A stretch of DNA of 64,000 nt from Macrostomum lignano (lineage: Eukaryota). The notes beneath the pieces are model-generated. The model saw only the letters and a list, made by a program, of their open reading frames with translations. It was not told the DNA's origin and did no database searches. This document shows, piece after piece, positions 35,101 through 62,817 of the stretch. The translations under genes were made by a program, and so were the position numbers. Location: positions 21,835 to 85,834 of the forward strand of contig NIVC01003647.1 of assembly GCA_002269645.1 (NCBI GenBank), read 5' to 3'. Each line of letters starts with the position of its first letter. Position 1 is the stretch's first letter.

Positions 35101-38100
35101 TGACTCCCCAGTGGATTCTCCCCACCTGCTTGACCCCCAGTGGATTCCCCCGCCTGCTTGACCCCCAGTGGATTCCCCCGCCTGCTTGACCCCCAGTGGA
35201 TTCCCCCGCCTGCTTGACCCCTAGTGGATTCCCCCGCCTGCTTGACCCCCAGTGGATTCCCCCACATGGCTGACCCCCAGTTGATTCCCCCACCTGGCTG
35301 ACCCCCAGTTGGTTCCTATGCATCCATACGGATTGCCGACTAACTTCTAATAATTGTTTAAAAGCTTATTTATTCTTAAAACCTATTGAATTGATCTGAC
35401 CACTTGGCAATCTTTCATCATTACTTCTAATTCTAGCTAATTTTAACTTAGAATTAATGCTGCACAATTCTCTTTTCTCCCCGCTCGCATGCGCAGACGA
35501 AGCCTGGAGCAACACGTTTACTTATGGTGAGCTGTAAAACTGTAAAAAGTATTTATTAGCTTGGCGCTCAGTTTTGCTGCTTTATGAAACTTTGCTTACA
35601 AATGACAGTTAATCTAGTACTGAAATGGTAGTTTGTCGTCAGAAGCGGTTGCTGCTATTGAGTAGCAGTAGGTAGAACTGGGGTAAGCCGTAGGTAGAAC
35701 TGGGGTAAGCCATAGGTAGAACTGGGGTAAGCGGTAGGTAGAATTGGGATAAGCCATAGGTAGAACTGGGGTAAGCGGTAGGTAGAATTGGGATAAGCCA
35801 TAGGTAGAACTGGGGTAAGCGGTAGGTAGAACTGGGATAAGCCGTAGGTAGAACTGGGGTGATTGGTAGGTAGCATTGGGAAGCGGTAGGTAGCATTGGG
35901 AAGCGGTAGGTAGCATTGGGAAGCGGTAGGTAGCATTGGGAAGCGGTAGGTAGCATTGGGAAGCGGTAGGTAGCATTGGGAAGCGGTAGGTAGCATTGGG
36001 AAGCGGTAGGTAGCATTGGGAAGCGGTAGGTAGCATTGGGAAGCGGTAGGTAGCATTGGGAAGCGGTAGGTAGCATTGGGAAGCGGTAGGTAGCATTGGG
36101 AAGCGGTAGGTAGCATTGGGAAGCGGTAGGTAGCATTGGGAAGCGGTAGGTAGCATTGGGAAGCGGTAGGTAGCATTGGGAAGCGGTAGGTAGCATTGGG
36201 AAGCGGTAGGTAGCATTGGGAAGCGGTAGGTAGCATTGGGAAGCGGTAGGTAGCATTGGGAAGCGGTAATGGGTAGTGATTAGAGCCAATGAGCTGATGC
36301 TGCATCAATTGATCACCTCAATCCCATGCAAACCACCCGCAGCCACCCAGATGCAGCCGGGCATGTCGGCCACCTACAAGGACCCGGCTAAGATAATTAA
36401 CCGGGCCTCCCTGCACAGGCACGGCAGTCTGCAGCACCAGCAGCAGCAGCAGCTGATGCAGAATTCTCACAATAACTTCAGTCTGTCGCTGCTGCAGGGC
36501 AGCCACCTGCCGCAGCAGCAGCAGCCGCCGGCCGCCGCGGCAGCCTACGGCGGCTTCCCGACAGTCGGATCGCACAGTGGCTACCCGGTTGAGCAGACCT
36601 CGATGATGGCCGATTACTATGGCCAGCAGCAGCAGCAGCAGCTCATGCAGCAGCCTCATCCTTATCAGCTGTATCAGCAGCACGGCAGCCAGCAGCAGCT
36701 GTACCTGCAGCACGGCAGCCAGCAGCAGCTGTACTATGGCCAGCAGCAGCATCAGCAGCCAATGATGCAGCACCAGGCCCACGGCGGCGGCACCCTGAGC
36801 AAGCGGGAGCCGCCCAGCGGTGGTTCGATTCACGAGAGCGAGCCGGACGACTTCAACGAACAGAATGAGACGCTGTTCTATCGGGGCGGCTCGCAGGGCC
36901 CCATCTACGGTCAGCACGTGCATCACCACCAGCAGCCGCAGGCGCAGCACCCGCACCAGCTCCAGCACCATCCTCACCACGGCGGCAGCGGCACGTTCGG
37001 CAGCGGCTACGGCGGCTCTGTGCAGCGCCTGGGCATGCAGCAGATGATGAATCCCAGCATCGGCGGACCGGCCGACAACGAGTCCGTTTATTCTTATTTT
37101 AGCCAGCACGACATCTACGCGCAGACGCCTGGCGGCCAGCAGCAGCAGCAGCAGCAGTTCTACTTGGTGGACGGTGGCACCCAGACGGCCGGCTCTCAGC
37201 AGCCGCAGCACCGGCACCATCGCCGTAAACGTCGCCGCCAGCCAGGAAGCTCCGGTTATCGCGGTGCCGGACTGTCCGGCGGCGACGCCGGCGGCAGCTC
37301 CGCCCAGCTGGGCACGCCGCCCGTTATGCGCGACACTTCAACTAATACGGACTTCCAGGAGGTTGACAACACGCTGCCCGAGGAGGACACTCTGCCGCCG
37401 CCTCCTGTGCCGCACCATCATCATCGCGGCCATCACGGTACGTTGGATGCACCTATTTTTAGTATATTTAGTAGTTTTTTTTAGTATTTTTAGTACTTTT
37501 AAAGGACACGTACTTTTAGTGCATATGTACTTTAAGCGGTTGTGTACTTTTAGTGAATGTTTACTTTGAGTGCATATGTACTCATTTTTACTGCTTTTAA
37601 CGCCCTATAAACCAACAGGCGAAATCTACGAACGTCCCGAAGACGTTGTTGGCAACGGCAACAACGGTATTGCGGCCGTGCCACCTCCGTCGCACCACAA
37701 CCATCATCATCCTGTTAGCGGCGTCGGCGTCGGCACCGGCGGCAGCGGCACCGGCAGCAGCGGTGGAGGTGGCGCCGGTTCGACCATCGCCGTTGGCGCC
37801 GCCGGCGGCCCCACCGCCCAGGCACAGGCGGCGGCCAACAATCGGGAGTCGACGCCAACTAGGCACGGCAGCAGCAGCGCGTCGCTTCACCGCGGCGGCG
37901 GCACCGGCGCTGGCGGCTCCTCCTCGCGCTATGGCGGCTCCGCTAATTCCGTCTCCTCTTCGTCGCTGCCCCGCGGCCGGGCGTTCAGCCCCCAGCCGGC
38001 GCATCAGCAGCACCAGCAGCAGCAGCCGCCGCCACCCCCGCCGCCGGGTGTTCCGAAAATGCGCAGCATCACCGACTACGCCATCCCTAGCGGCCAGTTC

Positions 38101-60077: not shown

Positions 60078-62817
60078 TTAGTCGACCTCCTCCATCTTGG
60101 CGTCGTCGGCGTTGGCATCGCCGCCGACCTCAGTTGGCATGGAAGACGAGGACTCGCCGGCGGCGGCGTCAGGGACGTCGTCCTCCTCGATGCCGAGGCC
60201 CAGCTTGATCATGCGGTGGATGCGGGTGGCGTGCACCTGCGGGTCCTCCAGGGCGAAGCCAGACGACAGCAGGGCGGTCTCGTACAGCAGCTGCACCAGG
60301 TCCTTCACCGACTTGTCGTTCTTGTCGGCCTCGGTGCGCTGCCTCAGCATCCCGCAGATGGAGTGGTCGGGTTGATCTCCAGGTGCTTCTTGGCCGCCAT
60401 GTAGCCCATGGTTGAGGAGTCGCGCAGAGCCTGGCAATGGGAGGCGGGGCATGGGGGAGCGGTTTATAATCTATCAGTTTCCGGCTACAAAAACTGGTAA
60501 AATCCGAGTCACAGCAGCAAATTGCCGGCTCACCTGCGCCTTCATGATGCGCTCCATGTTGGCGGACCAGCCGTACTGCGACGTGACGATGCAGCAGGGC
60601 GAGTCAACCAGCCGGTTGGACACGACCACCTTCTCGACCTTCTTGTCCAGGATGTCCTTCATGACCTTGCACAGCGGCTCAAAGGAGGCCTTCTTCTCCT
60701 CGAAGGCCTTCTTTTCGTCCTCGTCCTCAGGCAGCTCGAGGCCCTCCTTGGTGACGCAGACGAGCTTCTTGCCGTCGTACTCGCGCAGCTGCTGGGTGGC
60801 GTACTCGTCGATGGGATCGGTCATGTACAGCACCTCCAGGCCGCGCTTGCGCAGACGCTCAACAAAGGCGGAATGGGCGACCGCTTCCTTCGACTCGCCG
60901 GTGATGTAGTAGATGTCCTTCTGGTTCTCCTTCATGCGGCTGACGTAGTCCTTCAGGCTGGTCCAGTCGTCGCCGGAGCTGGTGGAGTAGTAGCGCAGGT
61001 AGTCGGCCAGCTTCTTGCGGTTGGTGCTGTCCTCGTGGATGCCCAGCTTCAGGTTCTTGCCGAACTGCTCGTAGAACTTCTTGAAGTTCTCCTTGTCCTC
61101 GGCGATGTCGTCGAACAGCTCCATGCACTTCTTCACGAGGTTCTTGCGGATGACCTTGAGAATCTTGTTCTGCTGCAGCATCTCACGGCTGATGTTCAGC
61201 GGCAGATCTTCGCTGTCCACGACGCCCTTGATGAAGTTCAGGTACTCGGGGATCAGCTCCTCGCAGTTGTCCATGATAAAGACGCGACGCACGTACAGCT
61301 TGATGTTGTTGCGCTTTTCGGTTCTCGAAGAGGTCGAACGGCGCGCGCTTCGGCCACACAACAGAAGAGCACGGAACTCGAGCTGACCTTCAACGCTGAA
61401 GTGCTTCACAGCCAGGTGCTCCTCCAGTCATTAGTCAGGGACTTGTAGAACTCGCCAGGGACTTGTAGAACTCGCCATACTCCTCCTGAGTGATGTCGTC
61501 CTGGTTCCTGGTCCAGATAGGCTTTGTCTTGTTCAGCTCCTCCTCGTCAATGTACTTCTCCTTGATCTTCTTTTTCTTCTTCTTGTCGCCTTTCTCATCT
61601 TCATCATTGTCATCCAAATCATCCTCGACCTTTGGCTTCTCCTTCTCGGCATCTTCACCGTCTTCTTTCTTCTCTTCCTTTTCTTCCTCAGCTTCGTCAT
61701 CGCTGACCTGTGAATAAAGACAAAGTTAGTGTATTAAATTTAATCAGTTGTTTAAATTAAATTATTGAAGACTGATTTTGATTTTTGAGTTAAAACAAAC
61801 TGGCTATAAAAATATATGAATTTTGCCATCTATCTTGCTGCCATTATATATACAAGTGTCTAGATTACTAGAATAAATGTAATATACAATATTATTACTA
61901 ATAGTAATATAGGAATATAAATTTTTTAATAGTAGTAAAAACTTATAAAAATGAAAAGCACTAACTAAAACAAATTAACATATAACACAATAAAACTAAA
62001 GCCTAAAGGCGTAAATTTTTCTAATAATAATATTCTATAGAAATTATATATTTATAATATTATATTTCATTGATATAATAACAACAAAAATTGCAGACTA
62101 GCTGTAGAACTAGGGGCCTATAATTAAAAATAATAAATTAACCACATCATAGAAGAATCTTACCTCCTTTTCCCGCTCCTTCTCCAGAACAAGCTTGATA
62201 GGATAACCAATGAACTGAGAGTGCTTCTTGATGACCTCCTTGACCTTCTTCTCTTCGATGTACTCGGTTTGATCCTCTTTCAGGTACAGAACGATCTTGG
62301 TGCCGCGTCCAATGGGCTCGCCATGGTCCGGCCGGACGGTGAAGCTGCCGCCAGCAGACGACTCCCAGACGTATTGCTCGTCGTCATTGTGCTTGGACGT
62401 AACAACAACACGGTCAGCTACAAGGTAGGCAGAATAGAAGCCAACACCGAACTGACCAATCATGCTGATATCAGCGCCAGCCTGCAGCGCCTCCATGAAG
62501 GCCTTGGTGCCAGAGCGAGCGATGGTACCAAGGTTGTTGACCAGATCGGCCTTGGTCATACCGATGCCACTGTCGATGATGGTCAGAGAATTGTCGCTCT
62601 TGTTAGGGATGATCTTGATTTCCAGATCGCGTCCGCTATCCAGAACCGACGAATCCGTGAGGCTCTGGTAGCGAATCTTGTCAATAGCATCGCTAGCGTT
62701 GGAAATGAGCTCACGAAGGAAGATTTCCTTGTTAGAATAGAAAGTGTTGATGATCAAGCTCATTAACTGAGCAATCTCGGCCTGGAAGGCGAAAGTCTCA
62801 ACCTCGGTGTCAGCCAT
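60078..62817 (-). CDS. hsp90: Cytosolic Hsp90 (HSP90A/Hsp83), 3 coding exons (62817-62164, 61707-60534, 60430-60078); ~720 aa once indels are corrected; frameshifted as given
   Basis: [50 protein letters not shown], charged linker, [16 protein letters not shown]; GT-AG introns in phase 0. Indels at ~61437-61476 (+20), ~61424 (-1), ~61355 (+2), ~61318 (-2), ~60368 (-1). Confidence 0.95.

Follow-up and report, generated by a model that had tools for sequence, protein, structure and literature searches.

The window analysed here comprises the last 64 kb (64,000 nucleotides, nt) of contig NIVC01003647.1 of Macrostomum lignano (85,834 nt; GenBank assembly GCA_002269645.1, Mlig_3_7), so that the end of the window is also the end of the contig. 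Within it, a predicted immunoglobulin (Ig)-superfamily receptor gene on the plus strand and a predicted cytosolic Hsp90 gene on the minus strand converge. As revealed by self-comparison of the window and a three-way alignment, the segment that runs from the last exon of the receptor gene into exon 2 of the Hsp90 gene is present as three direct, adjacent, head-to-tail units, designated A, B and C. The first-pass annotation of this DNA had described a tandem triplication of a ~6.8-kb unit with breakpoints in precisely these two exons, and both of these statements were borne out. The genes, units and junctions are arranged as follows.

12321-38328, plus strand: receptor gene, Ig-superfamily, single-pass (approximate span, derived from open segments on this strand)
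37619-38328, plus strand: last coding exon of the receptor gene, splice acceptor and stop codon read directly; contains the left breakpoint
37766-44615: unit A, 6850 nt; its receptor part is the continuation of the full receptor gene, its Hsp90 part a promoterless 3' fragment
44610-44630: junction 1, composed of GACTCG, then CGCCGGTC, then GAGGTGG
44624-51381: unit B, 6758 nt; recombinant middle copy, its left part being C-type and its right part A-type, and the changeover lying near 47805 within an array of 38-bp repeats
51376-51396: junction 2, the same as junction 1, flanks included
51390-60897: unit C, 9508 nt; its Hsp90 part is the continuation of the full-length Hsp90 gene, its receptor part a promoterless fragment
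60078-62817, minus strand: full-length cytosolic Hsp90 gene, with exon 1 at 62164-62817, exon 2 at 60534-61707 (contains the right breakpoint) and exon 3 at 60078-60430

Outside the minisatellites, ~1% of sites distinguish A from C, and B is a nearly exact match to one or the other; this near-identity of the units represents a similarity far beyond chance. The extra length of unit C is due only to an insertion block of 2587 nt (55530-58116). Because the two genes are convergent and both breakpoints are internal to them, each gene has kept a complete 3' end, that of the receptor gene in unit A and that of Hsp90 in unit C. The fragments that meet at each junction are 5'-truncated and promoterless, and abut head to head. 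In unit C, the receptor fragment carries two 1-nt deletions (51592 and 51657) and is consequently frameshifted. The two Hsp90 fragments are composed as follows.

43795-44615, minus strand: Hsp90 3' fragment of unit A, with exon 3 at 43795-44148, intron 2 at 44149-44251 and partial exon 2 at 44252-44615
50561-51381, minus strand: Hsp90 3' fragment of unit B, with exon 3 at 50561-50914, intron 2 at 50915-51017 and partial exon 2 at 51018-51381

Exon 3 of unit A has an intact frame and ends in MEEVD; the fragment of unit B is identical to that of unit A, exon 3 being intact in both.

There are exactly two occurrences of the 21-mer GACTCGCGCCGGTCGAGGTGG, at 44610-44630 and at 51376-51396. Two identical junctions had already been recognized in the first-pass annotation, which placed them at 44611-44630 and 51377-51396, that is, with start positions one base too late. 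The parental sequences agree with the earlier description and read ...GCAGCGGTGGAGGTGGCGCC for the receptor at 37766 and ...CTTCGACTCGCCGGTGATG for Hsp90 at 60897. When the 300-nt flanks of the two breakpoints are compared, the longest common word measures 7 nt, and since the parental flanks share no more than this, the first join was non-homologous. Unambiguous Hsp90 sequence extends up to 44615 and unambiguous receptor sequence starts at 44624, so that the eight bases in between (44616-44623, CGCCGGTC) are uniquely assignable to neither parent. On the one hand, a 5-nt microhomology, CGGTG, is common to both parents at the junction. On the other hand, GCGCCGGT-CGA (44615-44625) matches GCGCCGGTTCGA, located 15 nt downstream (44630-44641), at 11 of 12 positions and would be a templated insertion, which constitutes a second possible reading of the eight bases. 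Hence, the earlier interpretation, a CGGT(G) microhomology accompanied by a 2-nt insertion and one substitution, is sound in that the join is non-homologous and associated with microhomology, although a templated insertion fits as well. Judged from the sequence, both readings are typical of what alternative end joining or a template switch during replication leaves behind, and one junction cannot choose between them. Moreover, the single junction signature on which the earlier interpretation relied accounts for the first duplication but not for the third copy, which the mosaic structure of unit B attributes to homologous exchange or to assembly. It is very likely that the junction, and with it a duplication at the minimum, truly exists, because chimeric reads or stacked haplotypes would not link points that are 6.8 kb apart in direct orientation and with microhomology.

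The outer units also retain information on the age of their differences. At non-coding, non-repeat sites, 47 of 3780 aligned positions are different between A and C, giving 1.24%, which is close to the published divergence of 1.39-1.58% between subgenome copies of M. lignano (PMC10733133). In the Hsp90 coding sequence, by contrast, 0 substitutions are found in ~718 sites, while the 103-nt intron between the Hsp90 exons contains three differences; in the receptor coding sequence 3 of 549 sites differ, all of them third codon positions (two synonymous, one Q to H). If the promoterless fragments had decayed neutrally after the duplication, 9.8 coding substitutions would be expected as opposed to the 3 observed (P = 0.012), whereas constraint on both versions during their divergence would lead to an expectation of 3.8. 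The 1-2-nt insertions and deletions (indels) between the units are situated in homopolymers in 8 of 8 cases. Since the coding sequence is nearly unchanged while the non-coding sequence differs by 1.24%, the founders appear to have been diverged already when they were joined. This suggests that most of the divergence between A and C is older than the join and that the locus existed in two diverged versions, as alleles or as subgenome haplovariants, from which the founding units were derived.

Two minisatellites that are present in every unit are of relevance for the structure of the middle copy:

38657-39119 (unit A), 45528-46185 (unit B) and 52289-52946 (unit C): 15-bp minisatellite, the versions of B and C being longer and mutually identical
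40473-41133 (unit A), 47532-47898 (unit B) and 54295-54851 (unit C): 38-bp minisatellite, the presumed zone of the homologous exchange that produced B

Outside the minisatellites, the informative substitutions to the left of the 38-bp array unite B with C at 14 sites and with A at 3, none being private to B, while to the right of it B agrees with C at 2 sites and with A at 36, with 1 private substitution; the contrast between both blocks is pronounced (Fisher p = 1.6e-8). Within the crossover zone, the best decomposition of B consists of a C-type prefix of 474 nt and an A-type suffix of 261 nt, split at ~47805 in the 38-bp minisatellite. An exact model of C prefix plus A suffix was ruled out for the array of unit B, as it requires 10 mismatches. 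In addition, this array possesses its own repeat order and length, and clean substitutions private to B are found outside of it, for instance at 48297. Alleles carried by B alone include 47326T, 47371C and 48297A. Read in this way, B would be the hybrid that is expected from a misaligned exchange between two tandem units, which yields the first unit, a hybrid and the second unit with the junction doubled. The mismatches, the private array order and the private substitutions would not be produced by a pure assembler loop; rather, these features mark B as a separate sequence and thereby favour a real third copy. A further peculiarity of unit B is a patch of six private substitutions within ~270 nt (47326-47597), beside and inside the minisatellite that holds the switch from C to A. 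The patch may go back to error-prone repair during the exchange, to gene conversion with a third paralogue as donor, or to foreign reads that entered the consensus.

Unit C is set apart by an insertion of its own:

55535-58116: mobile-element-like insertion, 2582 nt, in unit C only
56509-57756, minus strand: open reading frame (ORF) of the element, 415 aa

On either side of the insertion lies a copy of the 5-bp target-site duplication TAAGA (55530-55534 and 58117-58121), and A and B contain the empty site, which together identify C as a distinct copy. The element ORF encodes 23-aa tandem repeats (69-nt period, 57077-57747) and a weak OTU-like cysteine-protease core. Its match to OTUD3 (4bou) is weak as well (E = 8.4e-4) and extends across the DGNCFF...HY region, while the Pfam OTU score of 17.2 bits is below the cut-off of 23.3.

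With a rough probability of 0.6, we read the locus as a young, locus-specific tandem amplification, that is, as a real three-copy array that would have been built in two mechanistically distinct steps and that is without demonstrated function. In the first step, to which the junction points, a break in Hsp90 exon 2 would have been joined non-homologously to a break in the last exon of the receptor gene, be it by end joining with microhomology or templated insertion, or by a replicative template switch. The intervening 6.8 kb would thus have been duplicated, with one complete copy of each gene preserved and a pair of promoterless 3' fragments left abutting at the junction. The founding units would stem from two versions of the locus that had diverged beforehand, both of them as functional genes. 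In the second step, for which the mosaic itself is directly visible, an unequal homologous crossover inside or at the edge of the 38-bp minisatellite would have generated unit B and, at the same time, added a second junction identical to the first. The 2.58-kb mobile element would have inserted into the C-type right part, and leftover long-read consensus errors are the most likely cause of the frame-breaking indels in the full-length Hsp90 gene and the unit C fragments. As far as can be judged from the letters, the array appears to be real and to be explained well by known mechanisms, with no indication of a new biological mechanism or genetic system. Neither an Rfam family nor a tRNA was found within the window, nor did the intergenic ORFs of the unit and the cytoplasmic tail of the receptor show a Pfam domain; lacking an RNA gene or domain, the intergenic part of the unit gives no sign of a hidden cargo behind the amplification. 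A literature search found no paper mentioning Mlig023254, the name under which the Hsp90 gene is deposited, or describing the locus.

Several points weigh against this reading or against parts of it. The contig stops only 1.18 kb past the Hsp90 ATG, just outside the amplified region, and collapsed or expanded haplovariants are common errors of Mlig_3_7 (PMC10733133). A real crossover and an assembler mis-join via the minisatellite predict the same gross mosaic. A 20-nt tandem duplication in the Hsp90 gene is atypical of consensus error, and this Hsp90 copy could be truly decaying. Finally, Mlig_3_7 was assembled with Canu 1.4 from PacBio continuous long reads (CLR) and polished by Pilon with Illumina and RNA-seq reads, and 180 Mb of its non-repetitive sequence are duplicated, in blocks with an identity of 95% or more (PMC5730564). 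Polishing with RNA-seq reads could have erased exon differences where a gene is highly expressed, which would weaken the case for founders that were diverged beforehand.

The most serious of the competing explanations, which we nevertheless regard as unlikely, holds that only two units exist, one A-type and one C-type with a single junction, and that the assembler mis-joined C and A reads in the 38-bp minisatellite, thereby creating B together with junction 2. Indeed, in ~5.9 kb of non-repeat sequence, no more than 6 substitutions and 4 small indels distinguish the stretch comprising the right part of A, junction 1 and the left part of B from that comprising the right part of B, junction 2 and the left part of C, and the switch in B falls in a minisatellite, where read overlaps are ambiguous. 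Besides the proximity of the contig end, the known tendency of Mlig_3_7 to over- and under-represent paralogous sequence (PMC10733133) points in the same direction. This scenario is opposed by the composition of B, which departs from an exact C prefix and A suffix, holds an array of private order and length and bears clean private substitutions outside that array. Furthermore, assemblers collapse tandem repeats more often than they expand them.

Improbable, in our view, is a contig that represents a mosaic of subgenome paralogues, in which the differences between A and C would be homeologous and the true copy number and composition would differ per locus. Such a view accords with the close match between the non-coding divergence of A and C and the published subgenome figure, with ~70% of Mlig_3_7 being present as three paralogous copies and with mosaic contigs being a recognised problem of this assembly (PMC10733133). 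The suffix g2 in the name of the Hsp90 gene likewise suggests further copies in the genome. However, at least three switches between haplovariants would be required, located exactly at junction 1, in the minisatellite and at junction 2, and at one locus or more the junction would have to exist in any case; the blocks of differences are, moreover, long and internally consistent.

It is very improbable that the promoterless fragments are under selection, either because exon 3 of A and B serves as alternative terminal exon of an Hsp90 read-through transcript or because a C-terminal fragment bearing MEEVD is trans-spliced, a process that concerns 38.8% of the genes of M. lignano (PMC5730564). This proposal would explain why the coding sequence is near-constant while intron and intergenic sequence differ by more than 1%: it is in line with the absence of substitutions from the Hsp90 coding sites as against the intron and the non-coding sites, with the restriction of all receptor coding substitutions to third codon positions, and with an exon 3 that is intact in A and B yet frameshifted in C. 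The identity of the exons could be taken as a sign of such selection, but divergence before the duplication or polishing with RNA-seq reads gives the same pattern and is the simpler cause. In addition, the fragments have no counterpart among annotated genes or proteins, they are devoid of a promoter element, the sole heat-shock element of the window being upstream of the full-length copy, and the receptor fragment of unit C is out of frame. Accordingly, the term "decoy" copies, which the first-pass annotation had used for the fragments, is better avoided because it implies a function, and there is no evidence that the promoterless fragments do anything. Exact look-ups of five ORFs of the window in other assemblies (A/B-type exon 3, C-type exon 3, the junction ORF, an ATG-started fragment and the element ORF) returned no record. 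A protein search with the junction-spanning translation in the Hsp90 frame retrieved only ordinary Hsp90s of at most 84% identity, none of which contained the chimeric part.

That all three units arose in one event, e.g. by repeated template switching, and have diverged since is scarcely credible in spite of the identical junctions, given that B is almost without private differences outside the minisatellites and the crossover zone while A and C are 1.24% apart, a two-block rather than star-like pattern by which this scenario was ruled out.

Both steps of the favoured two-step amplification have counterparts among known systems. Tandem segmental duplications that arise by microhomology-mediated, polymerase-theta-type end joining or by template switching, as in fork stalling and template switching (FoSTeS) or microhomology-mediated break-induced replication (MMBIR), constitute a known class. 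The array of M. lignano resembles them in its direct head-to-tail units, in the joining of a distal to a proximal breakpoint, in the lack of extended homology, and in a junction that combines a few bases of microhomology with a short, possibly templated, insertion. It deviates from the typical case of that class in that the founders were apparently already 1.24% apart, a difference more easily reconciled with exchange between two diverged homologues than with an event between sister chromatids; a single junction cannot narrow the mechanism of the first step any further within this class. With respect to the second step, the transition from Bar to double-Bar in Drosophila represents the classical expansion of a tandem duplication by unequal crossing-over, i.e. 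non-allelic homologous recombination (NAHR). In common with it, the array displays a second, identical junction and a hybrid middle copy of distal type on the left and proximal type on the right with one main switch. The proposed exchange differs from that precedent in its location in a 38-bp minisatellite, accompanied by private substitutions and a rearranged array, instead of being cleanly reciprocal. On the other hand, the human duplication-triplication/inversion-duplication rearrangements (DUP-TRP/INV-DUP) have an inverted middle copy and two different junctions. They likewise contain a segment that is present three times and microhomology at the junctions, whereas all three units of the array described here are direct and both junctions are identical. 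A resemblance also exists to the false expansions and mosaic contigs of Mlig_3_7 (PMC10733133), with which the locus shares the assembly, repeat-rich and near-identical copies and a close contig end; simple stacking of haplotypes, however, would not be expected to produce an exon-exon microhomology junction, an element with target duplication in a single unit, and variants private to B. If read as a two-step amplification, the locus offers a worked example of array growth, an illegitimate join followed by unequal homologous exchange, both of which would be legible in the differences between the copies. At the same time, it flags a spot in the widely used Mlig_3_7 reference at which the copy number calls for confirmation at the level of reads.

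The full-length Hsp90 gene, the introns of which follow the GT-AG rule, does not have an uninterrupted frame as assembled. The first-pass annotation had spoken of two intact genes, a description that does not apply to Hsp90, since it is broken by five frame-breaking indels and its GenBank product comprises 311 aa:

61436-61475, minus strand: 20-nt tandem duplication
within 61416-61429, minus strand: 1-nt deletion
within 61348-61364, minus strand: indel of +2 or -1, compensating with the following one
within 61308-61323, minus strand: indel of -2 or +1 in an A-run, compensating with the preceding one
60368, minus strand, exon 3: 1-nt deletion, G4 to G3

The N-terminal exon is 100% identical to GenBank PAA50394.1 (hypothetical protein BOX15_Mlig023254g2, Macrostomum lignano). 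This truncated product skips the 20-nt duplication, which suggests transcripts without it, and terminates behind the deletion that follows. The Hsp90 indels are more likely to be due to consensus error than to decay of a redundant subgenome copy. Such errors survive polishing in multi-copy sequence because a read that agrees in full with an error-free copy fails to align to the copy with the indel. A housekeeping Hsp90 is thus annotated as a truncated protein of 311 aa, probably through failed polishing in multi-copy sequence. After repair of the frame, the translation matches Pfam HSP90 with 792 bits as well as HATPase_c, and terminates in MEEVD. By these features the gene is predicted to encode a cytosolic Hsp90 (Hsp83 / HSP90A-B type) with the N-terminal GHKL ATPase, the middle and C-terminal domains and the MEEVD terminus. 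Protein identity between the repaired translation and an intact Hsp90 of 725 aa (P0241) amounts to 93.2%. The source of P0241 is a 2400-nt, apparently intronless Logan contig of run SRR27984949, the DNA of which is 86-93% identical to the Hsp90 of the window; the contig comes from a relative within the genus Macrostomum or else from a paralogue that has diverged. At 62993-63010, 176 nt upstream of the Hsp90 ATG, lies a perfect four-unit heat-shock element, TTCTAGAATATTCTAGAA, which is the only match in the 64-kb window.

Upstream of its last exon, the receptor gene is represented by the following segments:

near 12.4 kb, plus strand: putative signal-peptide exon
22.8-32 kb, plus strand: Ig exons
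near 34.2-34.7 kb, plus strand: transmembrane exon

When joined, the exons match the Pfam families Ig_3, I-set, ig and Ig_2, and their translation features a hydrophobic transmembrane stretch and a long tail rich in Q, G and H. Pfam gave no FN3 match at E <= 0.01, and the membrane-proximal region yielded nothing relevant even at E <= 10. The best relatives of solved structure are Robo1, contactins, UNC5 and DCC; a chain of Ihog, Boc or Cdon is absent among the solved relatives listed. In a protein database search, the membrane-proximal and cytoplasmic exons had no match at E <= 1e-5. Receptors of the Ihog/Boc/Cdon type are built from 4-5 Ig domains, 2-3 FN3 domains, which bind Hedgehog, and a single transmembrane helix. 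Hence, the former designation as Hedgehog co-receptor-like is not upheld by a protein whose Pfam domains are of the Ig type only and whose solved relatives are Robo1 and contactins instead of Ihog, Boc or Cdon. The gene is best described as a predicted Ig-superfamily receptor, with no family assigned.

Upstream of the receptor gene, an ORF of 206 aa (3221-3841, plus strand) has a K/E-rich, coiled-coil-like half and is without a Pfam match. The receptor introns (11700-36300) are dense with minisatellite arrays:

14032-15114: minisatellite
15857-19217: minisatellite of 3.3 kb, with a GC skew of up to +0.8
20010-21800: minisatellite
23295-24302: minisatellite
25638-26784: minisatellite
27769-28272: minisatellite
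28942-29602: minisatellite
32089-32525: minisatellite
32825-33275: minisatellite
35642-36268: minisatellite

This density agrees with the tandem-repeat content of 15% reported for the M. lignano genome.

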